From IMG/VR virus record IMGVR_UViG_3300017917_003143, positions 124,001 through 188,000 of that record: 64,000 bases of DNA; one strand, 5' to 3'. The position numbers and the translations under genes were made by a program. The notes beneath the pieces are model-generated. The model saw only the letters and a program-made list of their open reading frames with translations, was not told the origin of the DNA and ran no database searches. Of the stretch, positions 13,591 to 45,547 are shown piece after piece (positions within the stretch are counted from its first letter, which is position 1; the number at the start of each line of letters is the position of its first letter).

Positions 13591-13609
13591 CCAGTCATTA
13601 AACACGCGG

Positions 13610-14492: not shown

Positions 14493-14493
14493 C

Positions 14494-26744: not shown

Positions 26745-27391
26745 TTAGAGACGTCGTCCGATACAAGGCACCCCCGGTATGGGGAGTGCTTTGCATTGAC
26801 GTTTGGCACCGAGATGGCGCAAATGAACAGTTTTACCAAACTGCCATAGACCATCTATCTAAATACAATGTACAGGCAGTGGTAAACTGCACCATGGACT
26901 TGCGTCTTGACTATCAAGACAAAAGTGTGTATAATACACTTAATCAATATCTTTGGACAGATGGTGGCATCGTAGAAGAGCAGAAACGCAGAGTACTATC
27001 AGAGTTGATACATTCTGCAGGACATCAAGAAACTTCCCATGTGTTGCATGAAAAATTATTTGATTCCAACACAGTGCATCTAAGTAGTAGATTCACTTTC
27101 CTTGAACACTGCCATACGTTTTTTCCAACAGTCAAAGATTGGATCATGTTAGGCAGTGCCTGGGGCATGTGTTTCCATAGAGGTCCTATGGGTGTTGACA
27201 CAGTGGTTGACGTTGGAGACATGAAGTTCCATATGTTTCCTGAGTGGAGTGTGCAGACTGAAACCGGTTCGCCGCCTACGCTACAACAACTGCATGATGA
27301 TTTTTATGTATGGGCCCCCATAGATGATGGTGGATATAGATTGATAACGAGAGCACAAAATCACAAATGGTTCGAGAACAAGACGATTTAA
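26741..27391 (+). CDS. isochorismatase/cysteine hydrolase-like protein
   Basis: VLCIDVW and LGSAWGMC patterns. Confidence 0.4.
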   Translation: MIRDVVRYKAPPVWGVLCIDVWHRDGANEQFYQTAIDHLSKYNVQAVVNCTMDLRLDYQDKSVYNTLNQYLWTDGGIVEEQKRRVLSELIHSAGHQETSHVLHEKLFDSNTVHLSSRFTFLEHCHTFFPTVKDWIMLGSAWGMCFHRGPMGVDTVVDVGDMKFHMFPEWSVQTETGSPPTLQQLHDDFYVWAPIDDGGYRLITRAQNHKWFENKTI

Positions 27392-28896
27392 CTTCTAAAC
27401 AAAGCGACTATGCTGTGTTCCTTCCGGCTATCAGCAGTTTCTATGCTGGCTATATTGGACGAGAGCGCCACGGTGTAGGACTTGATCCAGGCCGATTGCC
27501 ACAAGGCATCGGTGACATGGAAGCCATGAACTGGCTCGACCCACAGAAAGCATTGTTTCCCTATCGCTGGAGCCTGTATTCAGCAGGACACGCTAACTTG
27601 GATCTTACCAAGTTTGATGCCAAAGAGGACATGCTACGCAATCGAGATCCTAACACTGTTATGTTAGCCGACTCCGGCGGATTCCAGATTGCCAAGGGTG
27701 TATGGCCCGGTCGTTGGGCAGACCCCACAGATAAAAAAGCCGAAGCACAACGAGAAAAAGTGCTCAAATGGCAGATGGGCATAGCCACATACGGTATGAC
27801 CATGGATATCCCTACCTGGACATTCCGTGACCCCAAAGCCGCCGAAGCATCAGGTATCCATAGCTACGATGATGCTGTGACAGCGACACAATACAACAAC
27901 GAATATTGGATCAACAACCGTTATGGTGACACCAAGATCCTAAACGTGCTACAGGGCGGTAATCACGCCGAAGCAGATCACTGGTATGACTTGATGAAGC
28001 ACTACTGCGATCCTGCCAAGTATCCAGATCGACATTTCAACGGTTGGGGCATGGGAGGTCAGAACATGTGTGACGTACACTTGGTGCTGAAACGCTTGGT
28101 GACCTTGATCCACGATGGCTTGTTGGAAAAAGGTGTACATGATTGGATGCACTTCTTGGGCACATCAAAGCTGGAGTGGGCATGTTTGCTCACTGATGTA
28201 CAACGTGCCATCCGCAAGTATCATAACTCAAACTTCACTATCTCCTTTGATTGTGCATCGCCATTCTTGGCCACTGCCAACGGACAGATCTACACACAGT
28301 TGAGAACAGAAGATCGAGGCAAATGGTCTTACATGATGAGTCCCACCGCTGATGATAAAAAGTATGCCACCGATTCAAGATCTTTCCGTGATGCTGTGCT
28401 ACAAGATCGGATACATGACATTTTTGAAGACAGTCCAATTTCATCTAGGATGGCTATCAAGGATGTGTGCATATACAAACCGGGCGATCTAAACAAAATC
28501 GGTAAAGAAGGAAAAACCTCTTGGGACTCATTCTCTTATGCTCTAATGATGGGCCATAATGTTTGGCACCATATCCGGGCAGTACAAGAAGCAAATCGGA
28601 GATATGACCAAGGTTTAGTGCCCGGAATGCTTGTACAAGAAACCTTTGATCGTGTATACTTTAGAGACTTAGTAGATACAATCTTCAAACAGCAAGATCG
28701 AGCAAAGAGTTTGAGCATCATTGACAACAATTCTAAATTTTGGGATCAGATCATTGGCACACGTGGGTTCACTGGCAAGAAAACTACCAACGCTCATACC
28801 CAATACAACAACTTGTTCGAAGTCGATGACGAAGAAACCGAAACAGAAGAATTTGACGAATCATTGTTAGATCAACTGGAGAATCAAAATGTATGA
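27367..28896 (+). CDS. dpdA: tRNA-guanine transglycosylase-like protein (DpdA-like)
   Basis: DSGGFQ (27670-27687), MTMD, VLQGG, HFLG, SFDCASP. Confidence 0.85.
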   Translation: MVREQDDLTSKQSDYAVFLPAISSFYAGYIGRERHGVGLDPGRLPQGIGDMEAMNWLDPQKALFPYRWSLYSAGHANLDLTKFDAKEDMLRNRDPNTVMLADSGGFQIAKGVWPGRWADPTDKKAEAQREKVLKWQMGIATYGMTMDIPTWTFRDPKAAEASGIHSYDDAVTATQYNNEYWINNRYGDTKILNVLQGGNHAEADHWYDLMKHYCDPAKYPDRHFNGWGMGGQNMCDVHLVLKRLVTLIHDGLLEKGVHDWMHFLGTSKLEWACLLTDVQRAIRKYHNSNFTISFDCASPFLATANGQIYTQLRTEDRGKWSYMMSPTADDKKYATDSRSFRDAVLQDRIHDIFEDSPISSRMAIKDVCIYKPGDLNKIGKEGKTSWDSFSYALMMGHNVWHHIRAVQEANRRYDQGLVPGMLVQETFDRVYFRDLVDTIFKQQDRAKSLSIIDNNSKFWDQIIGTRGFTGKKTTNAHTQYNNLFEVDDEETETEEFDESLLDQLENQNV

Positions 28897-29074: not shown

Positions 29075-29453
29075 TCTCGATCAACTGCTGTGTGAGAAAT
29101 ATCCTAAAATCTTTGCCGACAGGCACAAGACAATGACAGAAACCTGTATGTGTTGGGGCTTTGAGCACGGAGACGGTTGGTACAACATCATCGATCAACT
29201 ATGCTCCAACATCCAACATCACATTGATTGGAAAGAAAAGCAAGGACATGTTGTACCTCAAGTAGTGGCTGAACAGGTCAAAGAAAAGTTTGGCACACTA
29301 CGATTTTATTATCGTGGCGGCGATGATGCTATTGACGGTATGGTGCGTATGGCCGAATCCATGAGTGGTGTGACTTGTGAAGAGTGCGGAGCACCAGGCA
29401 CCACAGGCGGTCAAGGTTGGATCTCAACTCTTTGTGAAACTCATAGGAAATAA
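29064..29453 (+). CDS. conserved phage protein with CxxC
   Basis: QVKEKFGTLRFYY...CEECG. Confidence 0.7.
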   Translation: MKTDLDQLLCEKYPKIFADRHKTMTETCMCWGFEHGDGWYNIIDQLCSNIQHHIDWKEKQGHVVPQVVAEQVKEKFGTLRFYYRGGDDAIDGMVRMAESMSGVTCEECGAPGTTGGQGWISTLCETHRK

Positions 29454-29454
29454 C

Positions 29455-29970
29455 ATGGATAGACCCGGACACGAAACTGTTAAGTTTTTTATTGGTACTG
29501 AAGTAGAGCATACTCCAGCGTTTGGTCTTAAAACCTTGTTCGTGGTGGGTGTACATGATCACGACACTATCATGGACATAGCATTAGCCAATGATTGCAC
29601 ACATATCTATTTTGGTGCCAACCAGAGTTTTCCTCGACTGCCAGTTAATGATGCCGAAGGGTGGCGTCAGTGGGAAACCATGATCGATCAATGCTTGGAC
29701 GGAGGATTCTTGTGTACCTTGGATCTTGATGTATCCTGTGCCGAAGGCTTGCTGGAATCATTCCTGGTTGAAAAAAATAACTTTATTCCCATGCTGTCGG
29801 TCAAGCTCCCTTATATCCGGCAGTTCAATTACAATGCCACACTGAAGATCGATGACCGTGATTTCCAAGCTACCAATCCTGGAGTCTGGTGCCACAGTCT
29901 ACAAGATTTACAAAAAAGGTCAGTATTCACTGACTGGTCTAAATACACCCAAGACAAGGTAATAGAATAA
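29455..29970 (+). CDS. hypothetical protein in dpdA cluster
   Basis: ATG 29455 right after upstream stop. Confidence 0.7.
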   Translation: MDRPGHETVKFFIGTEVEHTPAFGLKTLFVVGVHDHDTIMDIALANDCTHIYFGANQSFPRLPVNDAEGWRQWETMIDQCLDGGFLCTLDLDVSCAEGLLESFLVEKNNFIPMLSVKLPYIRQFNYNATLKIDDRDFQATNPGVWCHSLQDLQKRSVFTDWSKYTQDKVIE

Positions 29971-30488
29971 TGGCACAACTATATCGTATCACACCGCTGG
30001 AAAAAAAGTCAATGGAATATTTCGTTGACGTGTTTGAGCGTCGAGAGGACGGTAGCATCCGTGGATTCCAAGTCACCGAAACCTGGCGTTGGGGTCAAGC
30101 GTTCCGTGAACTCGACGATCCTGTGTATGAAACAGAAATGGACCGTGTGCATTGCCGACCTGAAATTGGTTGGGGGTGCGAGCTTGACGATCTCTGTGCT
30201 GTCTGGGTAGAGTTCGACGAAGATGAGTTTACCGAAGAAGAAATGGACGAAATCCGCAGTATCCTGAATTGGGAGTCTGAAGACGAAGATGGACGTTGTG
30301 GCACTGCTTGGTTATACGATGGCGATCACAATTGGGAAATCGAAGATGATCATGTTGCTGTTTTGGGCCCAGTAAAGATTGACCTTATCGACGAAGATTC
30401 GTATAATGAGATTATTGAAGAAAATGTAAAACCTACCAAACTGGAACCATCCACTGGATGGCCGTTTAAGCCCAAGGAATCAGAATGA
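29970..30488 (+). CDS. acidic hypothetical protein
   Basis: 172 aa coupled ORF. Confidence 0.7.
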   Translation: MAQLYRITPLEKKSMEYFVDVFERREDGSIRGFQVTETWRWGQAFRELDDPVYETEMDRVHCRPEIGWGCELDDLCAVWVEFDEDEFTEEEMDEIRSILNWESEDEDGRCGTAWLYDGDHNWEIEDDHVAVLGPVKIDLIDEDSYNEIIEENVKPTKLEPSTGWPFKPKESE

Positions 30489-30934
30489 ATCAAGAACAAA
30501 GAGCCACAGTAGACCGTATCATAGAATCAGCAGATCGCAAGATCTGGGTCACATTCCGTAGAGAAGGCATCCATAAATATCCTGCGGCGCTGACGGATCC
30601 TGCGCTGGCCACAGGAGATGAATATGATGTATCGTTTTTGGGTTATCCTCATCGCCACATCTTTCATTTCAGGGTGTGGATCGATGTGTTCCACAATGAT
30701 CGGGACATCGAGTTCATCCAGTTCAAACGATGGATCGAGTCGCTGTATAATGGTCAAGGTTCCGTTTTAAGCCTTGATTACAAGTCTTGCGAAATGATCG
30801 CAGACGATCTGTATCTACAAATAGCCGGTCGTTATCCAGGCCGTGCTGTGTGGATTGAAGTAGCCGAAGATGGTGAGAACGGCTGCCTCATTAAGTATGA
30901 AACTCACCGTCCCTATAATTCAATCGTTATCTAA
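30485..30934 (+). CDS. QueD-like T-fold protein, DpdL-like (putative CDG decarboxylase)
   Basis: LGYPHRHIF = LxxxHRHxF (30638-30664); SCEMIA; EDGENG. Confidence 0.7.
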   Translation: MNQEQRATVDRIIESADRKIWVTFRREGIHKYPAALTDPALATGDEYDVSFLGYPHRHIFHFRVWIDVFHNDRDIEFIQFKRWIESLYNGQGSVLSLDYKSCEMIADDLYLQIAGRYPGRAVWIEVAEDGENGCLIKYETHRPYNSIVI

Positions 30935-30945
30935 AGGAAATCATC

Positions 30946-31215
30946 ATGGGCCGAACCTTGTTCAAACCCAATCCTCGCAGTCGTCAGGTCTGGGAAGACC
31001 TCGATCGTTATCTCAACTTTTGTGTGGACTATGGCTATCGCTATGATCCAGCAGATCTCTATAACAACCGGAGTTATCCATTCCAGCAGTTCCGTAAATT
31101 AGAAGCTGGCAAGGATCCTAAAGACATGTGGACTGAAGACAGCCGCAGATTTGCAGGCTATCGTCCAGATTTCAAGCGTGACGATCGCCGCCCTCGTGGA
31201 GATCGCCGTGCGTAA
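30946..31215 (+). CDS. hypothetical protein
   Basis: 89 aa, SD AAGGA. Confidence 0.7.
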   Translation: MGRTLFKPNPRSRQVWEDLDRYLNFCVDYGYRYDPADLYNNRSYPFQQFRKLEAGKDPKDMWTEDSRRFAGYRPDFKRDDRRPRGDRRA

Positions 31216-32401
31216 ACTATACTACATGGGCCTTGAGTCATACGAGGCTCGTTATACACTACAACTCACAGAATGGAATCGACGTGTTTTTGACCGCCGT
31301 GGCCTAGATGTTGTGTATGTGCCTGGATCAACTATTGACAATACCAAGAGTATTTCAGTAGGTCAGGTTTTAGACGCACACGGTCGCAGTTATTTTGGCA
31401 TGAGCCAGATGATGAATCTTGTACAGATGATGCGAAATGGAGAGGTCACAAATGAAGATGTCATTTATTTCGAAGATATGTTCCAGCCCGGTATCGAGAG
31501 CTTACCTTACATTATGGATCAGATCCCTGCAAATGATCGCCCTCGCATTTACGTTCGCTGTCTTGCTCAATCCATTGATCCTGATGATTTCGTACATGTA
31601 TGGGGTATGGCGAAATGGATGGGACTCTACGAACAAATGGTTAACGAGTTTGTTACAGGAGTTCTCGCCACAAACGAAGAGATGGTTGCTCATATGCGGA
31701 TTGCTGGATGGACTGCTCCTATATACAATATTAGTGGTCTAGCATTTGGCAAAGATGAAGTTCTCAGTCGAGTACAACTTCCTACTCCTTTTGAACAAAG
31801 ACCCAAGCGTGTGGGTTTTGCCGCGAGATTCGATCAAGAAAAGCAACCAGGATTCTTCATGGACTTGGTAGAAGAATATCAAAAGGTCTACCCAGATGTA
31901 CAGTTTGCTATCTATCAGGGCGGACCATTGCGTTCGAACAATCCTGAATACATCGATCGCGCTCGTCGATTAGAGTCCGAAGGTAAACTTTTGATTTTTG
32001 AAAATCTAAGCAAGAACGAATACTACCATCATCTGGCACACAACACTCGAGTGTTGTTTAACTGTGCCTTGCAAGACTGGGTTTCAAACACTGTCAGCGA
32101 AGCAGATACCTTGGGCTGTAATGTGCTGTATCCTGCTTATCGTAGTTTCCCAGAAACCTTTGCCAATGATCCTGATCGTTTGTATATTCCTTGGAGCGAA
32201 GACGATGCCTTCAACAAGTTGACAAATCTCTTGCGCACTCCACATCACAACATGGGATTGATTTCTGAATGGAACAATCGAACCATCGATCGTATCGTAG
32301 ATATCATCGAAGGCAATGGTGAACAATGGAATCGTAGCGGTAATCGTTACAGAGATCACGTTCCATACGCCAAATACCCAGTGGTCAAGATTGAAGAATG
32401 A
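31208..32401 (+). CDS. GT-B fold glycosyltransferase
   Basis: ARFDQEKQP; SEADTLGCNVLYP; likely GTG start 31208. Confidence 0.75.
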   Translation: MRKLYYMGLESYEARYTLQLTEWNRRVFDRRGLDVVYVPGSTIDNTKSISVGQVLDAHGRSYFGMSQMMNLVQMMRNGEVTNEDVIYFEDMFQPGIESLPYIMDQIPANDRPRIYVRCLAQSIDPDDFVHVWGMAKWMGLYEQMVNEFVTGVLATNEEMVAHMRIAGWTAPIYNISGLAFGKDEVLSRVQLPTPFEQRPKRVGFAARFDQEKQPGFFMDLVEEYQKVYPDVQFAIYQGGPLRSNNPEYIDRARRLESEGKLLIFENLSKNEYYHHLAHNTRVLFNCALQDWVSNTVSEADTLGCNVLYPAYRSFPETFANDPDRLYIPWSEDDAFNKLTNLLRTPHHNMGLISEWNNRTIDRIVDIIEGNGEQWNRSGNRYRDHVPYAKYPVVKIEE

Positions 32402-33351
32402 GTAGAATAATTGTAACAGGCGCAGGTGGATACATCGGAGGCCAGACAGTATTGAAACTGTTAGATCAAGGTCATAGTGTATATGCAGTTGATCAAACAC
32501 TTCCGCCACCTCATCTAATGGACGTCGGATGCAAATGGCTCACAGGTGACTTTGCCGGAGAAGTATTTTTAAGCTCTATCAAAAGTTTCAATCCAGAAGC
32601 CATCATCCATTGCGCCGGGACCAGTCTAGTAGGCCCTAGTGTAACCAATCCAATGTTGTACTATGACAATAACTTTGTCAAAACTAAAACAATGTTGGAT
32701 TACTTGATCCAAAACAAACTCACTGACATTCGTGTGATTTTTAGTTCTTCAGCGGCTACATATGGAGAACCGATAATGACTCCGTGCCAAGAAGAAGATC
32801 CAGCATTGCCGATCAGTCCTTATGGTGAAAGCAAACTCATGATCGAAATGATGATGAAAGCCTACGCCAATGCTTACGACTTGGATTTTGTTGCCTTCCG
32901 TTACTTCAATGCTTGCGGTGCTGATAGCCAAGCTCGTCATGGGCAAGCACCAGGTGCCACGCATATCATTGCTCGGGTACTTGAAAGTATTAGAGACGGC
33001 AAAGATTTTACTTTGTATGGCGATAACTATCCCACTCCTGATGGAACATGTATAAGAGATTACATACACGTGGAAGACATCGCTAATGCACACATCATGG
33101 CGATAAACTCGTCCGTTCCTGCAGGTGTTTATAACCTTGGCACGAATCAAGGCGCCAGCAATCGAGAAATCATTGCCATGTCTGAAAAAGTAACAGGACA
33201 ACAGGTTGATCTTGCAGTGGGTCCTATCCGTGCTGGAGATCCTGCTGTGCTCACTGCGTCAGCTGAACGATTTAACTCTATCAGTGGGTGGGCACCACAG
33301 TTTAATCTCGAAGACATGGTCCGACATGCCTGGACTTGGTATGTTCGATAA
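32398..33351 (+). CDS. galE: UDP-glucose 4-epimerase
   Basis: TGAGGYIG, SSSAATYG, YGESK, FRYFNACG, RDYIHVED. Confidence 0.92.
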   Translation: MSRIIVTGAGGYIGGQTVLKLLDQGHSVYAVDQTLPPPHLMDVGCKWLTGDFAGEVFLSSIKSFNPEAIIHCAGTSLVGPSVTNPMLYYDNNFVKTKTMLDYLIQNKLTDIRVIFSSSAATYGEPIMTPCQEEDPALPISPYGESKLMIEMMMKAYANAYDLDFVAFRYFNACGADSQARHGQAPGATHIIARVLESIRDGKDFTLYGDNYPTPDGTCIRDYIHVEDIANAHIMAINSSVPAGVYNLGTNQGASNREIIAMSEKVTGQQVDLAVGPIRAGDPAVLTASAERFNSISGWAPQFNLEDMVRHAWTWYVR

Positions 33352-33919
33352 GATACTAAAGTTTGAAAATGAGTTGGCAGAGTACACAGGTGCTCCCTAT
33401 GCCATCATGACTGACTGCTGTACACATGCCATCGAACTGTGTTTGCGGCATGACAAGATCAGAGAATGCCAGTTCACTGCTTATACATATCTTTCAATAC
33501 CCATGCTCATGCACAAGTTGGGCATAGAGTATCAATTGATAGATCAGACTTGGACTGGCGAATATCATTTTATCAATACCAGAGTCTGGGATAGTGCTCG
33601 CAGATTAGAAAGAGGAATGTATCGCCCTGGATCCATGCAGTGCTTGAGCTTTGGTTACGGAAAACCCCTGGAGATTGGCCGTGGCGGAGCGATATTGTTG
33701 GATGATCAACGAGCTTACGAAATCATGATAAAGCAACGCTATGATGGGCGAGACTTGTCTATCATGCCCTGGCAAGATCAGCGAGAATTCAGTGTTGGAT
33801 ATCATTACAAACCCACCATCGAAGAAGCCGTGCGAGGTTCAGAATTATTGCCTCTGGTCAATGAGGAACCTAAATATGTACAGTACCCAGACTGTAGAAA
33901 TTTTATAATTAAGGATTAA
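33341..33919 (+). CDS. short DegT/DnrJ-type PLP aminotransferase
   Basis: CTHAIEL, DSA, SFGYGKPLEIGRGGAI; 192 aa only. Confidence 0.7.
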   Translation: MFDKILKFENELAEYTGAPYAIMTDCCTHAIELCLRHDKIRECQFTAYTYLSIPMLMHKLGIEYQLIDQTWTGEYHFINTRVWDSARRLERGMYRPGSMQCLSFGYGKPLEIGRGGAILLDDQRAYEIMIKQRYDGRDLSIMPWQDQREFSVGYHYKPTIEEAVRGSELLPLVNEEPKYVQYPDCRNFIIKD

Positions 33920-33921
33920 AA

Positions 33922-34464
33922 ATGTTTAACGCGGTTCATCTCGATTTTGATTTTAAACCCCTGCTCGATGCTGACTATTCAGTACACATGGGCAGTTGTA
34001 TCAAGCACCAGGTCTACGAACTAACTGATATACACGAAAAGTATGGCGGTTTTCCTGACAGCTATAATATACACAATACCAAGATACACCAACTATGGTG
34101 GGACAAGACACAGGTGGATTACGACGAGCTTGGCCGACAGCTGGGCATGGAAGTGATCACAGTGTCAACCATCAAGCAACCACCAGGGTGCGTGGTTCCG
34201 TTCCATAGAGATACCTTTTTCCAGATCGGCAAACAATACCCAGATCGTACTGAAACCAAAGTCCGAGCCAACATCTATATGGAAGACTATCGCATGGGAC
34301 AGTTTATACAGTACGAGCTCAATGGTAAATTTGAAACCAGTACCAATTGGAAAGCTGGCGATGGATTCATATGGGGTAGTGATGTACTACATGTGAGTTC
34401 AAACGCTGGATTTCAGGACAAGTACACCATGCAGGTTTCTGGATTTCTATTGACAACGGCCTAA
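33922..34464 (+). CDS. 2OG-Fe(II)/cupin-type hydroxylase-like protein
   Basis: VPFHRD...LHVSSN; paralog of 12736..13293. Confidence 0.6.
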   Translation: MFNAVHLDFDFKPLLDADYSVHMGSCIKHQVYELTDIHEKYGGFPDSYNIHNTKIHQLWWDKTQVDYDELGRQLGMEVITVSTIKQPPGCVVPFHRDTFFQIGKQYPDRTETKVRANIYMEDYRMGQFIQYELNGKFETSTNWKAGDGFIWGSDVLHVSSNAGFQDKYTMQVSGFLLTTA

Positions 34465-34478
34465 ATAAACTTTACAAT
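34450..34478 (+). promoter_or_regulatory. folE promoter TTGACA-17-TACAAT with TAAATA in spacer
   Basis: direct reading. Confidence 0.65.
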
Positions 34479-34521
34479 AGCAACAAGACTGGTCATCCTC
34501 GACCCTAACTCGGAGAAAAAA

Positions 34522-35355
34522 TTGACAACATTTACATCAGAAGATCTAGAAAATTCTAAAAAATTAGTAGCAGAAGCACCATACCATCCCGGCTATGAAG
34601 ATGCAGTGATAGACAATGTCCTTGTCGGAGCAGAGCAACAAGGCGATGACGACAAAAATTATCAAGAAGCCTATCTCGGTGATGCTATCCGTTTCAAGAT
34701 GAAGCGTGATCGCAAACGTTTCTGGGCAGGAGACAACATCAGCGACTATGTCAGCGAAGAAGATAAAAAAATCTTGATCGACGAAGCCGCAGAGGCGTTT
34801 GAACTGGTTCTTGATCGTTTGCTGATCGATCGTGAAAACGACCCCAACTCCAAAGGCACAGCACGACGCTTGGCCAAGATGTACTTCAATGAAATAATGG
34901 CAGGACGTTATGACCCAGCACCCAGTGCCACAGCATTTCCAAATGATTCGGAGGACCGTTACGAAGGTATGTTGGTTGTCCGTAGTGAGCTTCGCAGTAT
35001 GTGTAGCCATCATCACCAGCCCGTTAGTGGTGTTGCTTATATTGGTATTATTGCCGCTCATAAACTTATCGGTCTATCAAAGTACACACGCATCGCACAG
35101 TGGTGTGCCCGACGTGGTACTCTCCAGGAGGAACTTGCTAATGATATTTGCAGGGAAATCAGCAAAGCAACCGACAGTCAAAACGTAGGGGTGTATATCC
35201 AAGCAATACATGGTTGCTGTGAGAATCGTGGTATCATGGCACACTCAAGTCTTACACAGACCACTGTGCTCACAGGAGTATTCAAAACAGATCCTGCTGT
35301 GAAAAAAGAGTTCATGGATAATATCAAACTGCAACAAGAGTTTGCACCACGATGA
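34522..35355 (+). CDS. folE: GTP cyclohydrolase I
   Basis: SMCSHHHQP, GLSK, QEEL, HGCCENRG; TTG start with GGAG. Confidence 0.93.
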   Translation: MTTFTSEDLENSKKLVAEAPYHPGYEDAVIDNVLVGAEQQGDDDKNYQEAYLGDAIRFKMKRDRKRFWAGDNISDYVSEEDKKILIDEAAEAFELVLDRLLIDRENDPNSKGTARRLAKMYFNEIMAGRYDPAPSATAFPNDSEDRYEGMLVVRSELRSMCSHHHQPVSGVAYIGIIAAHKLIGLSKYTRIAQWCARRGTLQEELANDICREISKATDSQNVGVYIQAIHGCCENRGIMAHSSLTQTTVLTGVFKTDPAVKKEFMDNIKLQQEFAPR

Positions 35356-36026
35356 CATATTGTCTGAGTCCAATGACCACAAAAGAAATTAGCACCCTGG
35401 TTGGTGCTAATTTTGTTTCTACTTTCCAAACAGAGATGGATGCTGTGTTGGCACCACTGAGAAAATATATTGCGTTGGGCCGACCGTTGAGCTTAGGCAA
35501 AGAACTTTGGGAATACGCAGTAAGCGATAGTATACCCGGTGCTGTTTGGAATGGTGCAGGACACAGTCTCATCGATGTTAAAATTGGATCAGACATTGGC
35601 ATCGACGTTAAAAGTGTGAGCAAACAAGAAAAGTCAAAATTGACCACTGAAGCCAGCATATTCCAAAATTTTAATCAAGATGCCAAGACACATTTTTCTA
35701 ACAAGAATACCCAAGGTGTTTGGGACATACATGTCCAGGGGTGGCTTGATAAAATATCCACGATCAAAAAATACTATATGCTAGGCATTATTCGAGACAA
35801 AGCCACATTGGATTGTTGTCTCTGTGGATTTAAAGTAGTCAGTACTTCTGCCATTTTGTCTGAGTGTCAGCATAGATACACAGGGGCTACTATCAAGTTC
35901 CATGATTTGGTAGATCCAGATTTTGCCGATGTACACTACTACAACAGCAAAAGCCGGTTGGAAATCAAATTTAAAAAACGGTGCTGGTCCGATCCAAATT
36001 ATCATCTCCCAATTTACCAATTTTGA
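35352..36026 (+). CDS. putative PD-(D/E)XK restriction-like endonuclease
   Basis: ELWE...IDVKIGSDIGIDVKS. Confidence 0.45.
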   Translation: MTYCLSPMTTKEISTLVGANFVSTFQTEMDAVLAPLRKYIALGRPLSLGKELWEYAVSDSIPGAVWNGAGHSLIDVKIGSDIGIDVKSVSKQEKSKLTTEASIFQNFNQDAKTHFSNKNTQGVWDIHVQGWLDKISTIKKYYMLGIIRDKATLDCCLCGFKVVSTSAILSECQHRYTGATIKFHDLVDPDFADVHYYNSKSRLEIKFKKRCWSDPNYHLPIYQF

Positions 36027-36100: not shown

Positions 36101-38005
36101 ATGCGTAAAACCATTTTGGCTGTCATTGCAATGGCCGCCTTTCCGGTTTATAGCCAAACACCACAGTCCTTTTTAGATATAGAAACCAATAGGACTTCGG
36201 CCGCGGCTGTGGGTGCCAATTGGGCTTGGAGCCGTGGATATACCGGCAAGGGTGCCACTATCTTGATCATGGACTCGGGTATCGATGTCAACAATCGAGA
36301 GTTTGCAGGGCGTATCAAATATTCCATTGACTATACTGCAACAGGATTACAAGACAAAGTAGGACACGGTACCCATGTGGCCGGTATTGCGGCCGCAGCC
36401 AACAATGGATTGGGCACACAAGGTATCGCATATGATGCCAACATCGCAGTGGCCAAGATAACCAATACCAGTTCCGTGAGCATGCAATCAGCGCAGAGAG
36501 CATTGGTCTGGGCCGGACAGTACAGTGATATAGTAGTAGCCAATCTTTCTGCCAACGTCAACTATAGCACCGCATATCTATCAGCCATGCGCCAAGTGGC
36601 ACCAGGCATGTTTGTCAACACAGACAGGATCTATGGCGGTAAAAATTATTACAATCTTGAAAATCCAGGCTCGTGGAAGCTACCAGCCGAAATGGTTCTC
36701 ACGGTGTCTGCTGGTAACAGCCGAGCTGGATTTGTACAAAGTCCGGCAGTATTCGCCACAGCAACAGATGCCTCAGGTAACTTGGTCTTGGGCGGTCGCA
36801 TGTTGGTAGTAGGCAACTGGAACACCAGCCTCAATGTAGTAGAAGGTGCCCAGGCAGGGCATATATGTAAAGACTTTGTCAACAACACTTGCCAAGATCG
36901 TTATCGTACCAGTGATTTTTATATCCTAGCACCAGGATCTGGTATCGTCAGCACTGGTATCGGAGATACCACCCGTACTATGAGTGGTACCAGCCAAGCC
37001 GCGCCTACTGTGGCCGGAGCAGTGGCGGTGATCAATCAAATGTGGCCTTATATGAAAGGTGAGCAGATCGCACAGTTATTGCTCAAGACTGCCAACAAAA
37101 ATCTTCCTGGATATCGTGTTGAAGTCATGGGACAAGGTCTTTTAGATCTTAACAGAGCAACTCAACCCATAGGCAACCTAGGTATCTCAACTACAGGACG
37201 CACTGGTCCTGCTAGACCCATCACAGGATCGATCAGTGTGGCTAATGTGGGTGCTGTAGCTGGTAAATTAAGCTCAGTCACTGTGGTCGATGAATTCCAG
37301 AGAGATTACCGCGTAGACATCAGCAGTATGGCCACTAAAAACATGTGGACGCAGTCAGCGTTCCTACTTGATGCCGCTCCAGGACAAAGCTGGTCAAGTC
37401 GTTGGACCGGAGTTCCAGTGGCATCAAACATGGGTGTATATGGTCAAACATTAGGAAACAATTCTACAGTGACTATTGACACAAGGCATCTCAACCCTAC
37501 TGCACAGTTCAGTCATCAAGTCACTGTGACCAACACAGAAGTCAATCCATTTATACAATTTTCAGGCATGTGGGGCACTGTGCAAGGGGCGACTACATTT
37601 GAATACTCTACAATGTATCGTCCCAAACCCGAAGGGTGGTATGGTCAGATGGGAGTTATGCAAACTTCCACCCGATATCAACCAGGCATGATCGAACGGG
37701 TAGATCCAATTTACAGCGTTCACGCCATGGCCGGTTACCAGATACAAGGTTGGAACCTATTTGGCGGAATCAAACCCACAGTGATCCACGGAAATATAAC
37801 CATGCGATTACCGGGCGATGTTGACAGTGATGGCAATTTACAGTATAATACTACAAAAGTAAGTCTGGCAGGTGCCCGACCAGTGAGTTACATTGGTACC
37901 GGTTGGCAACATCAGTGGCGAGGCGGTCATGGATTTGCTTTCCGTACCATGCTTGCCGAAGACAAATCTAACATGACCCGGGTCAACTATACATATAGGT
38001 TTTAA
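36101..38005 (+). CDS. S8 subtilase with signal peptide and autotransporter-like C-terminal barrel
   Basis: MDSG, HGTHVAG, GTSQAAP; ends VNYTYRF. Confidence 0.85.
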   Translation: MRKTILAVIAMAAFPVYSQTPQSFLDIETNRTSAAAVGANWAWSRGYTGKGATILIMDSGIDVNNREFAGRIKYSIDYTATGLQDKVGHGTHVAGIAAAANNGLGTQGIAYDANIAVAKITNTSSVSMQSAQRALVWAGQYSDIVVANLSANVNYSTAYLSAMRQVAPGMFVNTDRIYGGKNYYNLENPGSWKLPAEMVLTVSAGNSRAGFVQSPAVFATATDASGNLVLGGRMLVVGNWNTSLNVVEGAQAGHICKDFVNNTCQDRYRTSDFYILAPGSGIVSTGIGDTTRTMSGTSQAAPTVAGAVAVINQMWPYMKGEQIAQLLLKTANKNLPGYRVEVMGQGLLDLNRATQPIGNLGISTTGRTGPARPITGSISVANVGAVAGKLSSVTVVDEFQRDYRVDISSMATKNMWTQSAFLLDAAPGQSWSSRWTGVPVASNMGVYGQTLGNNSTVTIDTRHLNPTAQFSHQVTVTNTEVNPFIQFSGMWGTVQGATTFEYSTMYRPKPEGWYGQMGVMQTSTRYQPGMIERVDPIYSVHAMAGYQIQGWNLFGGIKPTVIHGNITMRLPGDVDSDGNLQYNTTKVSLAGARPVSYIGTGWQHQWRGGHGFAFRTMLAEDKSNMTRVNYTYRF

Positions 38006-38649: not shown

Positions 38650-39189
38650 ATGGCAAAATATCTTTCTACAAAAACATATGGCAACGATCGTGGACTATCA
38701 TGCTGTTTCCGCCAATGGCGTTCAACACATAGTCACTGCTCATTGCTACATGGATATTCCATCGGTATCAAACTAATCTTTGAAAGTGAAACACTAGACG
38801 ACCGTAATTGGGTCATGGACTTCGGTGGACTCAAAGCATTCAAAGAATGGAGCGAATACATGTTCGATCACACACTGGTCATTGCTGAAGATGATCCTCA
38901 TCGTGAAATGTTTGAAAAAATGGCCGAGCTTGGTTTACAAGATCAAGGCGGAGTATGTGACATTCGTATTGTGCCAGCTGTAGGTTGTGAAAAGTTTAGT
39001 GAACTGGCTTACAAAACTATGGAAAATATTCTCCGAGCATTCCAAGCAGGCAATTCTTGGTTCCTTGTAGCACAAGATGGAATTACCTTAAAAGAATTCA
39101 ATTGCCGTTACCCTGTTGGTCAAGGTGTCAAGTTACGTTCTGTAGAAGTATTCGAACACAACGCAAACTCAGCAGTCTACGAAGGTTAA
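38650..39189 (+). CDS. queD: 6-carboxy-5,6,7,8-tetrahydropterin synthase
   Basis: CSLLHGY, MDFGG, FDH, E..ANSA; SD AGGAG. Confidence 0.9.
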   Translation: MAKYLSTKTYGNDRGLSCCFRQWRSTHSHCSLLHGYSIGIKLIFESETLDDRNWVMDFGGLKAFKEWSEYMFDHTLVIAEDDPHREMFEKMAELGLQDQGGVCDIRIVPAVGCEKFSELAYKTMENILRAFQAGNSWFLVAQDGITLKEFNCRYPVGQGVKLRSVEVFEHNANSAVYEG

Positions 39190-39191
39190 TC

Positions 39192-42295: not shown

Positions 42296-42897
42296 AAGAT
42301 ATATTCACCAACATCGTTGAGCACGGACAGTGGAGAGCAGGCCACACAGTGTGTGGTAATGGTAGCACCATGCACTACACTGATTATCTGCGCCAACACC
42401 TCAGCGCATTCCTAGAGAAGCACCAAATCAGTTCGATGTTTGATGCACCTTGTGGGGATTACACATGGATGAGCCAAATCCAGCTTTCAGCTAACTTACG
42501 TTATATCGGCGGGGACATTGTTGACAGTTTGATTGAAAAAAACAAGCAATCTTATCCAACTGTAGATTTTCGTGTAGTTGACATAGCCCAAGATGATTTA
42601 CCTGATGTAGATTTGCTTTTTTGTCGAGATTGTTTGATACATTTTAGTCATGCTGATATACGCAGAGTGTTTGAAAATATCTCTCGTAGCAGTATAAAAT
42701 ATGTGTTGATGACTAACTATGCTCATTCAGACAACTCAGACATTGCCACCGGAGGATTCCGTGGAGTTAATTTTCTTCAGGCACCGTACGAATTTGAAGC
42801 ACCCATAGACAGTATCGAAGATTGGGTACCAGGGTATGCACCAAGAAGTATGTGCCTTTGGAACCGTGAAACCATTATTGGATATTTAGAAAAATGA
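42292..42897 (+). CDS. class I SAM methyltransferase
   Basis: FDAPCGD, YIGGDIV, CRDCLIH. Confidence 0.8.
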   Translation: MKDIFTNIVEHGQWRAGHTVCGNGSTMHYTDYLRQHLSAFLEKHQISSMFDAPCGDYTWMSQIQLSANLRYIGGDIVDSLIEKNKQSYPTVDFRVVDIAQDDLPDVDLLFCRDCLIHFSHADIRRVFENISRSSIKYVLMTNYAHSDNSDIATGGFRGVNFLQAPYEFEAPIDSIEDWVPGYAPRSMCLWNRETIIGYLEK

Positions 42898-43472
42898 AAA
42901 AAGTTTATGTAAGCTGGACCGATGTACAAAGACAAACACAAGAAATCATAAGACAGATGTATCTAGATGAGTGGCGCCCAGACTACATCGTAGGTATCAC
43001 TCGAGGAGGCTTGGTACCGGCCAATCTTATCAGTCAATATCTTGACGTACCAATGTATGCTCTGCAAGTACGATTAAGAGATGGCGGCGATGAAGATTGT
43101 GAAAGCAATCTCTGGATGAGCGAAGAAGCATTTGGATATCACAGAACCGATGACTTGCCTGGGGCAAGCAATCCTACCCTTAGGAAAAATATTCTCATCG
43201 TAGACGATATAAACGACTCAGGCGCCACTATAAACTGGATACGCCAAGACTGGCAAACAACTTGCTTGCCCGACGACCCGGCCTGGGCCAATATCTGGGG
43301 CAACAATGTACGTATAGCCACACTGTATGACAACGAGACCAGTGCCGCGGAAATTTATGTAAATTACACAGCCGAAACAGTAAACAAATTCGAAGATCCG
43401 CAGTGGATAGTATTCCCCTGGGAAGAGTGGTGGAAGAAATGGCATCCCAATGAAGAACACATCAAGTCCTGA
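42894..43472 (+). CDS. purine phosphoribosyltransferase (Gpt-like)
   Basis: GITRGGLVP, LIVDDINDSGAT, WIVFPWE. Confidence 0.85.
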   Translation: MKKVYVSWTDVQRQTQEIIRQMYLDEWRPDYIVGITRGGLVPANLISQYLDVPMYALQVRLRDGGDEDCESNLWMSEEAFGYHRTDDLPGASNPTLRKNILIVDDINDSGATINWIRQDWQTTCLPDDPAWANIWGNNVRIATLYDNETSAAEIYVNYTAETVNKFEDPQWIVFPWEEWWKKWHPNEEHIKS

Positions 43473-44347: not shown

Positions 44348-44666
44348 TGTTGGTGGCGAGATAGTCAAAGACAACGAAGTTTATTTGTTGAAAGACAATC
44401 ACGATCTAAATAATCTCGTGCTGAGCTCTACCAAGCTCTACAGGCATCAACAAACTCGTGGGCACAGGCACCCTGGACAAGAAGAAGTATATTTCTTTAT
44501 ACAAGGCACAGGAAAGATGATCGTAGGCGAAGAAACCGATGAACCTTTTTCTGTCAGTGCTGGAGATATTGTGTTGATCCCTGATGGTGCATTTCATCGT
44601 GTGATCAACGATGGAGAGACACATTTAATTTTTAATTGCGTATTTGATGGCAAAAGGAATCATTGA
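44325..44666 (+). CDS. cupin domain protein
   Basis: GHRHPGQEEVY...G; GDIVLIP.G.FH. Confidence 0.85.
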   Translation: MKKYSFHDVGGEIVKDNEVYLLKDNHDLNNLVLSSTKLYRHQQTRGHRHPGQEEVYFFIQGTGKMIVGEETDEPFSVSAGDIVLIPDGAFHRVINDGETHLIFNCVFDGKRNH

Positions 44667-45547
44667 TGGAAAAGATTACATACACAGAGATATTTTACAG
44701 CATCCAAGGTGAAGGACGTTGGGCAGGTGTGCCCAGTGTATTCTTCCGCACATATGGATGCAACTTCCGCTGTCGTAAGTTTGGTCGTCCGCGAGACGAA
44801 CAGCTGGAAGGACACAATCCTGAAGTGATCGAGATCATCAAGAACATCGATCAATACAAAAAGTTTGAAGACTTGCCTTTGGCCAAAACTGGCTGTGACA
44901 GCTATGCCAGCATTTACCCTGAGTTCAAGCGATTCAACGAACAAGACAGCGTAGAAACTATCGTAGACAAGATGCATGCTCTCATACCCAACAATCGTTG
45001 GGATCAAGGCATAGGTGATGACGTGCATCTCGTGATTACAGGTGGTGAGCCATTGCTGGGTTATCAGCAACTGTATCCTGATCTCATCGAATACTGTCGT
45101 CGAGCTGGTCTACGCAATCTAACATTCGAGACCAACGGCAGCCAGCCTTTGCATCCAGAAGTGTATGAATATTTGTTTGAAGAGTTTACACGTCATGGCA
45201 GAGACTACGACAAGCTGACATTCAGTGTGAGCCCAAAACTACCTTGCTCGGGCGAAGCATGGGATGTAGCAATCAATCCCAAAGTGGTCAAGAGCTATGA
45301 AATGGTAGGCATGACTTATCTCAAGTTTGTTGTGGCCACACCACAGGATGTGGCAGATGCTGAACGTGCTGTGGAAGAATATCGAGAAGCCGGTTTTGGC
45401 GGCCCTGTGTATCTCATGCCCATGGGCGGTGTACCTGATGTATACAATCTCAACACACAGCAAGTGGCAACATTGGCCATGGAACGTGGATGGCGTTACA
45501 GTCCTAGACTACAAGTGGATATCTGGCGTAATGCTTGGGGTACCTGA
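44663..45547 (+). CDS. queE: 7-carboxy-7-deazaguanine synthase (radical SAM)
   Basis: SIQGEG, FRTYGCNFRC...CDS, ITGGEP, ETNG, SPK, YSPRLQ. Confidence 0.9.
   Translation: MMEKITYTEIFYSIQGEGRWAGVPSVFFRTYGCNFRCRKFGRPRDEQLEGHNPEVIEIIKNIDQYKKFEDLPLAKTGCDSYASIYPEFKRFNEQDSVETIVDKMHALIPNNRWDQGIGDDVHLVITGGEPLLGYQQLYPDLIEYCRRAGLRNLTFETNGSQPLHPEVYEYLFEEFTRHGRDYDKLTFSVSPKLPCSGEAWDVAINPKVVKSYEMVGMTYLKFVVATPQDVADAERAVEEYREAGFGGPVYLMPMGGVPDVYNLNTQQVATLAMERGWRYSPRLQVDIWRNAWGT

Follow-up and report, generated by a model that had tools for sequence, protein, structure and literature searches.

A predicted glycosyltransferase tied to 7-deazaguanine DNA modification genes in a giant freshwater phage and its distant relatives

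A predicted sugar-transfer gene is linked to deazaguanine genes

A 343.6-kb jumbo phage from a pond metagenome keeps a predicted glycosyltransferase (GT) and a sugar epimerase beside genes inferred to replace guanine in its DNA with 7-deazaguanine, and the same pairing recurs in many distantly related phages. This linkage points to an undescribed sugar-decorated deazaguanine base, although the evidence is comparative and the chemistry is inferred. We studied positions 30485-35355 of the window, i.e., the whole 64,000-nt stretch that was analysed (positions 124,001 to 188,000 of IMG/VR record IMGVR_UViG_3300017917_003143). The original prediction described a closely packed run of DpdL-like, small ORF, GT-B, galE, short DegT, dioxygenase, and folE genes in this region, and this observation held, as all seven genes are present, co-directional, and tightly packed. 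The block and the associated features of the window are as follows.

27367..28896 (+), DpdA-like DNA/tRNA-guanine transglycosylase (TGT)-superfamily protein (509 aa), of a divergent subfamily shared with PA5oct EST35_0316
29377..29970 (+), conserved unknown protein "u197" (about 170 aa from an internal ATG) that travels with the module
30379..30407 (+), sigma-70-like promoter consensus (11 of 12; consensus match only) just upstream of DpdL
30485..30934 (+), DpdL homologue (QueD-like T-fold paralogue; proposed 7-carboxy-7-deazaguanine decarboxylase)
30946..31215 (+), small basic ORF (89 aa, pI 9.7), no function assigned
31226..32401 (+), predicted GT4-like retaining-type GT-B glycosyltransferase (391 aa), the conserved partner of DpdL
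32398..33351 (+), UDP-hexose 4-epimerase (GalE)
33341..33919 (+), short (192 aa) DegT/DnrJ/EryC1-family PLP enzyme lacking the C-terminal domain and about 50 central residues
33922..34464 (+), accessory small cupin/2OG-Fe(II)-oxygenase-like protein (180 aa)
34450..34478 (+), sigma-70-like promoter consensus (TTGACA-17-TACAAT; consensus match only) before FolE
34522..35355 (+), GTP cyclohydrolase I (FolE), first step to the deazaguanine base
38650..39189 (+), QueD/6-carboxy-tetrahydropterin synthase
42894..43472 (+), purine-type phosphoribosyltransferase that recurs in these clusters
44663..45547 (+), QueE-like radical SAM 7-carboxy-7-deazaguanine synthase

A 172-aa ORF and DpdL, as well as GT and GalE, each overlap as ATGA, while GalE and the short DegT overlap by 11 nt, and the short DegT and the oxygenase-like gene are 2 nt apart.

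The deazaguanine genes

The DpdL homologue carries the published DpdL signature LxxxHRHxF as LGYPHRHIF, matches phrog_17812 (E 9.5e-36), and in tblastn hits the phiST, ACP17, and PA5oct loci, with 57% identity to the ACP17 DpdL locus and 35% to the phiST one. The DpdA-like protein, which lies 1.6 kb upstream of DpdL, falls below the thresholds of Pfam PF01702 and PF23859, but several lines of evidence place it in the TGT superfamily: it has DSGGFQ and FDC motifs; hhalign to the BUDD/BUCT/BCSR5 DpdA family gives 96.9% (E 1.6e-10); its HMM hits the ACP17 protein ASD50403, the only TGT-like gene in the ACP17 cluster; all top-50 PDB Foldseek hits of its AF2 model (pLDDT 79) are TGT; and an Atlas lead also pointed to TGT/DpdA. 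FolE (PF01227, E 4.9e-39; phrog_2197) and QueD (PF01242, E 3.7e-12; phrog_2389, E 6.5e-35) were identified by profile searches, whereas QueE matched NCBIfam QueE models only weakly (E 1.8e-12, below cut-off) but is 43% identical to BUCT-ZZ01 QueE (E 3e-79). No QueC reached its cut-off. The phosphoribosyltransferase (PF00156, E 3e-14) has homologues in the BUCT-ZZ01 and PA5oct clusters and in 47 of 80 loci of the second IMG/VR set described below (the sister set).

The glycosyltransferase and its neighbours

The likely start of the GT is the ATG at 31226, after the stop of the small ORF, rather than the TTG at 31151. The protein has no Pfam hit, but its AF2 model (pLDDT 94, pTM 0.92) shows a clear GT4-like GT-B fold, with VIA Z of 25-26 to sucrose-phosphate synthase, MshA, and BshA. 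Residues R201/E205/K206 and D284-x7-E292 are invariant, donor-binding motifs are conserved across 59 diverse homologues, and the gene is a single copy in this genome. GalE scored 294 bits against TIGR01179, above its 262-bit cut-off (PF01370, E 5e-48). The short DegT, whose real start is probably 33341, scored 47 bits against PF01041, aligns to PDB 8vr3 across the PLP-lysine motif, and belongs to a virus-only cluster family of about 195 aa; its PLP lysine (K108) and D84 are at least 95% conserved in 63 homologues. The oxygenase-like protein had no Pfam hit, but it has a conserved P-H-x-D...H motif, is 30% identical to an annotated 2OG-Fe(II) oxygenase of cyanophage S-SCSM2R, and gave an Atlas lead to PF05118-like (Asp/Asn-hydroxylase-like) proteins, and thus the dioxygenase assignment is plausible but not proven. 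No family hit was obtained for u197.

Conservation across phage lineages

Gene order is kept in relatives far beyond chance. In 80 related IMG/VR loci, DpdL was found in 78, GT in 80, the small ORF in 80, GalE in 78 (directly after the GT in 78 of 77 covered close relatives), the short DegT in 72 (72 of 76 close relatives), FolE in 71, and u197 in 74 of about 72 covered loci, while the oxygenase-like gene was found in only 9 (9 of 74 relatives). We next examined the sister set, a second, divergent set of 80 IMG/VR loci, in which DpdL is present in 78 at a median distance of 1.1 kb, a GalE-family gene is present in 71 and directly follows the GT in 51, including clusters with a different DpdA type, and u197 is present in 41, whereas the small ORF, the short DegT, and the oxygenase-like gene were each found in 0 of 80. 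The small ORF is thus conserved only in the close family, to which the short DegT is also limited.

More broadly, this GT family (778 clusters at 50% identity) is almost always next to DpdL and deazaguanine genes. In GenBank phages, the GT HMM hit only genes inside deazaguanine clusters, in six lineages: ACP17 (DpdA-GT-DpdL-QueE), PA5oct (DpdA-GT-DpdL), BUDD, BCSR5, Phosso (DpdL-GT-FolE), and BUCT-ZZ01 (DpdA-DpdL-GT). Of seven distant metagenome representatives (30-48% identity), six have DpdL within 2 kb, and the seventh has a PTPS-family gene and a QueE-like gene within 3.5 kb. Homologues of u197 lie beside DpdA/GT/DpdL in ACP17 and in a metagenome contig (L090). Among 185,579 species genomes there were only two hits, both on MAG contigs and both next to DpdL, QueE, and FolE. 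In contrast, the GT is absent from the whole genomes of phiST (the tested phage whose DNA holds plain 2'-deoxy-7-deazaguanine, dDG), RHph_I1_18, Ahp1, and Bakedbeans, with a 5 of 5 positive control, and it therefore behaves as an add-on downstream of DpdL.

A sugar-tailoring step as the most likely reading

We favor the view, with a probability of roughly 0.55, that the block is the tailoring arm of a DpdL-type 7-deazaguanine DNA modification system. In this view, as inferred from family membership, FolE, QueD, and QueE would turn GTP into 7-carboxy-7-deazaguanine (CDG), DpdL would convert it to 7-deazaguanine or a close derivative, and the TGT-fold DpdA-like enzyme would exchange guanine in phage DNA for that base. 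As inferred from conserved gene linkage, the GT would take a UDP-hexose epimerised at C4 by the adjacent GalE (UDP-Gal or UDP-GalNAc) and attach it to the deazaguanine, either on the free base before insertion or on the base already in DNA. In the close family, the short DegT (and, in a minority, the small oxygenase) would further modify the sugar, for example by amination of a keto-sugar, although this is the weakest step; no 4-keto-sugar-forming enzyme for the short DegT was found in the block. Our analyses establish the gene identities, folds, catalytic-motif conservation, and near-universal GT-DpdL linkage, while the donor, the acceptor atom, the timing, and even the placement of the sugar on DNA remain inferences.

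The original prediction, that a deazapurine or oxidised base may carry a galactose or amino-sugar as a new DNA modification, with surface-glycan synthesis as the alternative, was partly supported. Co-occurrence of the GT with dpdA, which had been set as a test beforehand, came out strongly positive, as the family is embedded between or beside DpdA-like and DpdL genes in many independent phage lineages, and because GalE travels with the GT in divergent clades, a 4-epimerised UDP-hexose donor is plausible. The genome has no ThyA-type pyrimidine hydroxymethylase, and thus no 5hmC or 5hmU route to a T-even-style acceptor. The oxidised base, however, has no support, given that the oxygenase-like gene is accessory. 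Homologues of the short DegT and the oxygenase in other phages lie in multi-GT glycan islands away from deazaguanine genes, so surface- or other-glycan roles remain possible for these two.

Other evidence bears on this reading in both directions. BCSR5 and BUDD place a PIG-L-like deacetylase next to the GT (24 bits, below Pfam's cut-off of 28), which echoes the BshA/BshB pairing of a GlcNAc transferase with a deacetylase. Cui et al. (PMC10516641) could not obtain dDG in E. coli from ACP17 dpdL plus dpdA alone and suggested that further enzymes are needed. Conversely, plain 7-deazaguanine has no hydroxyl, so the linkage would have to be N- or C-glycosidic, or on a different derivative than that measured in phiST; among GT-bearing phages, PA5oct DNA is known only to resist G-site restriction enzymes; the nearest structural relatives of the GT (BshA, MshA, SenB, sucrose-phosphate synthase, and pterin glucosyltransferase) act on small molecules rather than DNA; and the genome holds a second sugar cassette (SDR plus full-length DegT plus carbamoyltransferase) elsewhere.

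Alternative explanations

Three alternatives are less likely. First, the GT, with DpdL, may make a soluble glycosylated heterocycle that is not placed in DNA, such as a pterin glycoside like cyanobacterial biopterin glucoside or a huimycin-like deazapurine glycoside, with a role as a metabolite, inhibitor, or protectant during infection. The best structural relatives are indeed small-molecule GT4 enzymes, including UDP-glucose:tetrahydrobiopterin glucosyltransferase (Z 22.6-23.5), FolE plus a PTPS-family enzyme is also the route to pterins, the huimycin pathway glycosylates a free deazapurine, and the activity of DpdL is itself only proposed. Even so, we consider this unlikely, as the GT sits between or next to the DpdA-like transglycosylase and DpdL in ACP17, PA5oct, BUDD, BCSR5, BUCT-ZZ01, and L090, QueE (which commits the pathway to deazapurines, not pterins) is nearly always in the cluster, the clusters lie among replication genes such as PolB, and the similarity to BGluT is no greater than to other GT4 enzymes.

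Second, and slightly less likely, glycosylation may be transient or auxiliary, with a sugar-linked intermediate made, for example, to activate or solubilise CDG/DG or to serve DpdL or DpdA, and the sugar lost afterwards to leave plain 7-deazaguanine in the virion. This would fit the tight DpdL-GT pairing, often with overlapping genes, the failure of ACP17 dpdL plus dpdA alone to give dDG, and a reported vibriophage with complete dDG substitution. However, phiST makes dDG without any member of this GT family, extra sugar-tailoring genes (GalE, short DegT, and PIG-L-like deacetylase) make little sense for a discarded group, and no hydrolase for removing the sugar was identified.

Finally, the least likely alternative is that the GT-GalE-DegT-oxygenase genes build a surface or virion glycan, or modify a host glycan or protein, and neighbour the deazaguanine genes only as auxiliary cargo of the same early region, a view that draws on the glycan-island homologues of the short DegT and oxygenase (in Flavobacterium phage immuto_2-6A, cyanophage S-SCSM2R, and huge phages), on the JGI name "glycosyltransferase involved in cell wall biosynthesis" for some GT homologues, and on a second GT2-like gene (39057-40049) and the other sugar cassette in the genome, but which is countered by a GT-DpdL linkage that holds across lineages with different backbones and gene orders and in every sampled context, by the essential absence of the family from cellular genomes, by the absence of the GT from immuto_2-6A, and by the lack of flippase, polymerase, or lipid-carrier genes in the block.

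Comparison with known systems

The closest known system is the DpdL/DpdA3-type dDG system of Cellulophaga phage phiST (Cui, Hutinet et al., NAR 2023, PMC10516641), which likewise has FolE, QueD, and QueE without QueC, a DpdL with the LxxxHRHxF motif, a divergent TGT-family DpdA, and a cluster beside the replicative polymerase. It differs in having no member of this GT family, GalE, or short DegT, and the DpdA-like protein studied here is instead of the PA5oct type and is not hit by the Pfam TGT/DpdA models. T-even phage glucosylation of 5-hydroxymethylcytosine (T4 alpha- and beta-glucosyltransferases) and newer 5hmC/5-hydroxycytosine glycosylation systems are similar in coupling a phage-encoded GT-B enzyme that uses a UDP-sugar to a base-modification pathway, presumably to escape host nucleases. 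Here, however, the target would be a purine analogue rather than a pyrimidine, and the GT is not close to the DNA alpha- or beta-GTs, which were not in the top 50 of the PDB searches, with S-TIM5 DNA alpha-GT ranking only 18th in BFVD (TM 0.50).

Chemical precedents also exist. In the huimycin/dapiramicin pathways, a GTP-to-deazapurine core (FolE, QueD, and QueE) is combined with a glycosyltransferase (HuiG) that puts a HexNAc from a UDP-sugar (UDP-GlcNAc) on the 7-deazapurine base, and methyltransferases are nearby; yet these are actinomycete secondary metabolites that use preQ0 (QueC present), have no DpdA, and are not in DNA. In animal tRNA, galactose or mannose is added to queuosine, a 7-deazaguanine derivative already installed by a TGT-family enzyme (QTGAL/QTMAN; PMC12518689), but this occurs on RNA, the acceptor is a hydroxyl of the cyclopentenediol side chain that is absent here, and these eukaryotic enzymes did not appear among the top 30 Swiss-Prot fold matches of the GT. 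BshA and MshA, GT4 GlcNAc transferases followed by the PIG-L/LmbE deacetylases BshB and MshB in bacillithiol and mycothiol synthesis, are among the best structural matches (Z about 25), but their acceptors are malate or inositol phosphate, and the close family studied here has GalE and a short DegT instead of a deacetylase.

The dDG study does not mention the GT gene that lies between dpdA and dpdL in ACP17 ("glycosyl" has 0 occurrences in its text), and no paper in the literature library we searched links a glycosyltransferase to this pathway. Overall, our data suggest a sugar-tailoring step on 7-deazaguanine DNA modification, in which the final virion base would be a glycosyl-7-deazaguanine, an undescribed sugar-decorated base.

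Genomic setting and gene content of the block

The genome is a single 343,632-bp virus record, rated 99% complete by CheckV, of which the window covers bases 124001-188000, and its closest run-level source is a pond metagenome. A megablast of 12 kb against GenBank phages found no match. The region of interest forms one long + strand array of replication and nucleotide-metabolism genes, in which a family-B polymerase is followed by a methyltransferase-like gene, a phrog_12062 protein, several unknowns and the block itself, and then by a subtilase, HIT, QueD, a GT2-like gene, methyltransferases, a phosphoribosyltransferase and a QueE-like radical SAM enzyme. The features discussed here are as follows.

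22399-25059, + strand: family-B polymerase
27367-28896, + strand: DpdA-like protein of 509 aa
29377-29970, + strand: unknown protein of about 170 aa ("u197")
30485-30934, + strand: DpdL homologue
30946-31215, + strand: small basic ORF of 89 aa
31226 (most likely start), + strand: GT-B glycosyltransferase (GT) of 391 aa, fold predicted
32398-33351, + strand: GalE
33341 (probable start), + strand: short DegT of 192 aa
between the short DegT and FolE, + strand: oxygenase-like protein of 180 aa
upstream of 35385, + strand: FolE
36101-38005, + strand: subtilase (S8) of 634 aa
38007-38387, + strand: HIT-family protein
39057-40049, + strand: GT2-like glycosyltransferase
42894-43472, + strand: purine-type phosphoribosyltransferase

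The original prediction listed a DpdL-like gene, a small ORF, a GT-B, galE, a short DegT, a dioxygenase and folE, and this observation is confirmed, as every one of these genes is present. The DpdL homologue carries the published signature LxxxHRHxF (as LGYPHRHIF), which replaces the CxxxHGH of QueD, and by tblastn it matches the DpdL loci of the two phages used to define DpdL, ACP17 (57% identity, E 4e-37) and phiST (35%, E 8e-11). The 89-aa ORF is basic (pI 9.7) and has no known family. FolE is unambiguous. Gene junctions overlap or nearly touch, and near-consensus sigma-70-like sites lie just before DpdL and just before FolE, so DpdL-to-oxygenase may be one transcription unit, although this rests on consensus matches only; a search of sequencing runs found only DNA metagenomes (pond, freshwater, estuary, and aquaculture) and no RNA run. 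A 12-bp perfect hairpin followed by a T-rich tail (35385-35414) lies right after FolE, just inside the start of ORF 35352-36026, and is terminator-like on both strands.

The GT most likely starts at the ATG at 31226, after the stop of the small ORF. It has no Pfam hit at E<=0.01 (and thus no match to Glycos_transf_1, PF00534), and no PHROG or meaningful NCBIfam hit, although two family members (P0142 and P0162) carry PF00534/PF13692 and UniProt names the ACP17 homologue "Glycosyl transferase family 1 domain-containing". An AlphaFold2 (AF2) model built on 59 diverse homologues is confident (pLDDT 94, pTM 0.92) and shows the two Rossmann-like domains of a GT-B fold closest to retaining GT4-type enzymes, with Z scores of 24-26 over 310-340 residues to sucrose-phosphate synthase (26.0), MshA (25.4), BshA (25.4), PglH and TarM, and with SenB also among the matches. 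An Arg/Glu-Lys cluster (R201, E205, and K206) is invariant, and D284-x7-E292, a variant of the EX7E motif, is invariant or nearly so in 59 sequences; the assignment of these residues to donor binding is by analogy. A complex prediction of the GT with DpdL returned no answer (score 0.00), which is neither for nor against binding.

We found no specific kinship to the T-even DNA glucosyltransferases, as T4 AGT and BGT were not among the top 50 PDB matches and a cyanophage DNA alpha-GT ranked only 18th at TM 0.50. A T4-like 5hmC route was also rejected because the genome has no PF00303 homologue that could serve as a hydroxymethylase, and only an ordinary ThyX.

The gene at 32398-33351 scores 294.4 bits against the GalE equivalog model TIGR01179, above its 262.3-bit cut-off, and the motifs expected for NAD binding (GAGGYIG) and catalysis (SSSAATYG and YGESK) are readable in the sequence. 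The short DegT scores 47.3 bits against PF01041 (cut-off 19.8 bits), but at 192 aa it is far from the full two-domain architecture of about 360-400 aa: only profile positions 24-92 and about 163-221 are matched, that is, the N-terminal third and the lysine region, so that about 50 central residues and the whole C-terminal domain are lacking. The PLP lysine (K108, in SFGYGK), which aligns to that of PDB 8vr3, and the Asp of WDSAR (D84) are at least 95% conserved in 63 distinct homologues, and the protein belongs to a virus-only family of about 195-aa DegT-like proteins. The putative oxygenase has no Pfam or PDB sequence hit; a P-H-x-D...H motif is conserved in 11 sequences, and the protein shows 30% identity to an annotated 2OG-Fe(II) oxygenase of cyanophage S-SCSM2R and an Atlas lead to PF05118 and Asp/Asn-hydroxylase-like clusters.

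A divergent DpdA-like protein completes the deazaguanine gene set

Pfam models for TGT (PF01702, E<=0.1) and DpdA (PF23859, E<=10) found nothing in the whole genome. However, the 509-aa protein at 27367-28896 has a DSGGFQ motif that aligns with the annotated queuine tRNA-ribosyltransferase of Xanthomonas phage BUDD, and it is 36% identical to PA5oct EST35_0316. Single-sequence PDB searches of this protein (and of the 180-aa protein) gave nothing useful, and a profile of its family against PDB sequences also found nothing, whereas profile-profile comparison linked the family to the BUDD/BUCT-ZZ01/BCSR5 DpdA family (hhalign 96.9%, E 1.6e-10), and the HMMs of both families hit ACP17 ASD50403, the only TGT-like gene in the ACP17 cluster. 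Its AF2 model (pLDDT 79, pTM 0.81) retrieved only tRNA-guanine transglycosylases among its top 50 PDB Foldseek matches (E about 1e-6, TM by target about 0.5), consistent with the TGT (beta/alpha)8-barrel fold. D102-S-G-G-F and F294-D295-C are invariant or nearly so in the family alignment and would, by analogy with Zymomonas TGT, hold the catalytic aspartates. For the zinc site (CxCxxC...H), a CTCPxC motif is visible in the BUDD-type consensus but is not evident among the invariant columns of the window type. Protein pI values were all acidic, including that of the DpdA-like protein, and we judged them uninformative about DNA binding. Homology of this protein to the TGT/DpdA families is thus reached only by profile-profile comparison, by HMM to ACP17 ASD50403 and by fold, and it therefore represents a divergent subfamily. 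With FolE, QueD, QueE and DpdL present, and with PF06508 giving only two sub-threshold PP-loop hits elsewhere in the genome for QueC, the window encodes a complete DpdL-type system.

The glycosyltransferase belongs to the deazaguanine module

Having identified the components, we then asked where else the GT occurs. A tblastn search of 50,697 phage records found the GT in only three, in each case within a FolE/QueD/QueE/DpdL/DpdA cluster. An HMM of the family then also detected PA5oct EST35_0317, which lies between the DpdA-like gene and DpdL; ACP17 ASD50404, in the order QueD-FolE-u197-like-DpdA-GT-DpdL-QueE; and the annotated "glycosyltransferase" of Sinorhizobium phage Phosso, in the order DpdL-GT-...-FolE. 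BFVD independently ranked the ACP17 protein second (E 2.6e-16, TM 0.74/0.83), far above generic viral GTs. A search for related loci with the ACP17 GT alone found only ACP17 itself. Whole-genome HMM searches found no family member in phiST, RHph_I1_18, Ahp1, Bakedbeans or immuto_2-6A, while the same search recovered 5 of 5 positive controls. Among the phages lacking the GT, Rhizobium phage RHph_I1_18 has, directly after DpdL where other phages have the GT, a gene annotated "Appr-1-p processing enzyme family" (macro domain; 12420-13244 of its locus, L102), an annotation that Pfam did not confirm at E<=1, and in Vibrio phage Bakedbeans (gp176; 9212-10363 of its locus, L106) DpdL is fused to an unassigned N-terminal region of about 260 aa.

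Homologue searches with the GT and with the DpdA-like protein returned only close relatives because the family is so abundant, and it was a search among 50% representatives that gave diversity, showing 778 clusters at 50% identity. Of seven distant representatives sampled (30-48% identity), six have a DpdL with the HRHxF motif within 2 kb, usually directly upstream, and the seventh has a PTPS-family gene and a QueE-like gene within 3.5 kb. A scan of IMG/VR with a profile of distant members returned 80 further loci, whose GTs are 38-65% identical to that of the window and fall into 10 clusters at 80% identity, with two different DpdA types; DpdL was present in 78 of the 80, at a median distance of 1.1 kb, and all 78 carry HRHxF. 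The only two hits among 185,579 species genomes are MAG contigs where the GT is again next to DpdL, QueE and FolE. In summary, the GT is an add-on that is, with few exceptions in these samples, found where DpdL is, whereas DpdL also occurs without it; phiST, the tested phage with measured plain dDG (along with its close relatives phi19:2 and phi13:1), lacks it.

The backbone synteny PolB, phrog_12062-like, DpdA-like, ..., DpdL, ..., QueE shows that this uncultured jumbo phage is a distant relative of the PA5oct group; the PA5oct polymerase (1605-6831 of its locus, L089) is split by a homing-endonuclease gene, while the homologue in the window (47-49% identical) is intact. The phage family is very abundant in public metagenomes, as at least 599 IMG/VR stretches and at least 7,997 (about 8000) protein clusters at 90% identity matched the GT (E <= 1e-3), with the best-listed hits about 80% identical to it, and contigs of 317-365 kb come from freshwater, estuary, lagoon and aquaculture samples.

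Partner genes differ in how closely they follow the glycosyltransferase

GalE, the short DegT and the oxygenase are not equivalent. In the 80 closest relatives (GT about 80% identical), the order DpdL, small ORF, GT, GalE, short DegT, FolE is kept, but the oxygenase appears in only 9 of 74. In the divergent second set of 80 loci, a GalE-family gene (34-47% identical, all E<1e-40) is present in 71, and in 51 of those it starts within about 250 bp of the GT stop, including in clusters with the other DpdA type. GalE is therefore a recurrent partner of the GT, which argues for a UDP-Gal or UDP-GalNAc donor. The short DegT, the small ORF and the oxygenase are absent from that set (0 of 80 each), and we rejected the oxygenase as a core step on these counts. 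Short DegT homologues elsewhere (Flavobacterium phage immuto_2-6A, cyanophage S-SCSM2R, and two huge phages) lie in islands of several glycosyltransferases, epimerases, oxygenases and radical SAM enzymes, and the S-SCSM2R island also holds the oxygenase homologue. These two genes are lineage-specific sugar-tailoring cargo, and their link to DNA is the weakest part of the original prediction.

In BCSR5 (7143-8981 of locus L004) and BUDD (7359-8932 of locus L005), the GT is instead preceded by a conserved trio of a PAPS-reductase-like protein, a PIG-L-like putative deacetylase (E 4.7e-5, below cut-off) and a protein of about 150 aa. This recalls the BshA/BshB and MshA/MshB logic and suggests that a HexNAc is deacetylated and then further ligated, and that different lineages decorate the sugar differently.

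Other genes recur in these clusters. The u197 protein travels with DpdA, GT and DpdL in ACP17 (ASD50402), in a metagenome contig (L090) and in 41 of 80 loci of the second set; it matched no known family, and may be a further pathway component. The phosphoribosyltransferase (42894-43472 in the window, 4075-4536 in phage locus L003, and 11946-12380 in the PA5oct locus) recurs inside deazaguanine clusters of BUCT-ZZ01 (between QueE and QueD), PA5oct (between DpdL and QueE) and 47 of 80 loci of the second set. Between FolE and QueD, the HIT gene is conserved in 54 of 54 covered relatives and the subtilase in few. The GT2-like gene (phrog_14945, E 4.9e-10; PF00535 weak) overlaps the end of QueD, is conserved in 49 of 54 relatives, and could add a second sugar.

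The window also holds a dense set of further modification-type genes, most of which are not conserved with the GT module in relatives: three SAM methyltransferases (40042-40830, 40830-41573, and 42292-42897), three DUF6071 paralogues (46254-46964, 47729-48433, and 50795-51514), a B12-binding radical SAM enzyme (48888-50813) and a SPASM radical SAM enzyme (20995-21999). A weak HhH-GPD (EndoIII/Ogg-like) match (43838-44347; E 2.5e-5, below cut-off) occurs in this phage, whose relatives are targeted by defence nucleases that use inactivated EndoIII sensor domains. Outside the window, a second sugar cassette lies near the ThyX gene, at 223094-225122 and 230110-231597 of the virus record (6095-8123 and 13111-14598 of the extracted locus L190), and comprises an SDR epimerase/dehydratase (326 aa), a full-length DegT aminotransferase (364 aa), three unknown proteins of 350-400 aa and a NodU/CmcH-type carbamoyltransferase.

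Proposed pathway and alternative explanations

We propose that GTP is converted to CDG by FolE, QueD and QueE, that DpdL acts on CDG (the literature proposes decarboxylation to 7-deazaguanine, an activity that remains unproven), that DpdA exchanges guanine in DNA for the base, and that the GT adds a GalE-supplied sugar to the deazaguanine, either before insertion, as the structural relatives act on small molecules, or after. The phosphoribosyltransferase may recycle the guanine released by DpdA into GTP, or could make a deazaguanine nucleotide. Plain 7-deazaguanine offers N2, O6 or the pyrrole carbons as possible acceptor atoms. There is chemical precedent, in that huimycin shows that a GT can glycosylate a 7-deazapurine base from UDP-GlcNAc, and animal tRNA carries galactosyl- and mannosyl-queuosine. 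No paper in the library searched links a glycosyltransferase to DpdL, DpdA3 or 7-deazaguanine in DNA, and the paper defining DpdL (Cui et al.) does not contain the word "glycosyl...". PA5oct DNA resists several G-containing restriction sites and is attacked by END nucleases that sense modified G, but its base has not been identified.

The original prediction was that a deazapurine or oxidised base may carry a galactose or amino-sugar, and this interpretation is partly supported. Our sequence, fold-prediction and linkage data strongly support that the GT, and probably GalE, work in the deazaguanine pathway, whereas CDG decarboxylation by DpdL, glycosyl transfer from a nucleotide sugar by the GT, and the presence of a sugar-bearing base in DNA are inferred, the last remaining unproven; the oxidised-base idea is unsupported. 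Two alternatives cannot be excluded on present evidence. The module might make a soluble pterin or deazapurine glycoside, as the pterin glucosyltransferase BGluT is among the structural matches of the GT at Z about 23, or the glycosylated species might be a transient intermediate with plain dDG as the end product. An unrelated surface or virion glycan is disfavoured for GT and GalE by the linkage data, but remains possible for the short DegT and the oxygenase, and the genome has the separate sugar cassette near 223-231 kb.

Under the boldest reading compatible with these data, to which we give a probability of roughly 0.45, phages carrying the DpdA-GT-DpdL module, including an extremely abundant freshwater jumbo-phage family and the cultured phages PA5oct and ACP17, replace guanine with a glycosylated 7-deazaguanine bearing a hexose, hexosamine or N-acetylhexosamine. 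This would be the first sugar-bearing purine analogue found in DNA, and in the lineage of this phage the sugar would be further elaborated by a minimal PLP enzyme.

7-Deazaguanine DNA modifications and DNA glycosylation are the two best-studied routes by which phages hide DNA from restriction enzymes, CRISPR and glycosylase defences, and so far they have been seen on different bases. A glycosyltransferase that is an integral, conserved part of DpdL-type deazaguanine clusters would join the two routes and predict a new base. It could explain why ACP17 dpdL plus dpdA alone gave no product in E. coli, and it would also bear on how END nucleases and Dag glycosylases recognise "modified G" phages such as PA5oct, and it matters for the sequencing and host prediction of a very abundant freshwater jumbo-phage group.
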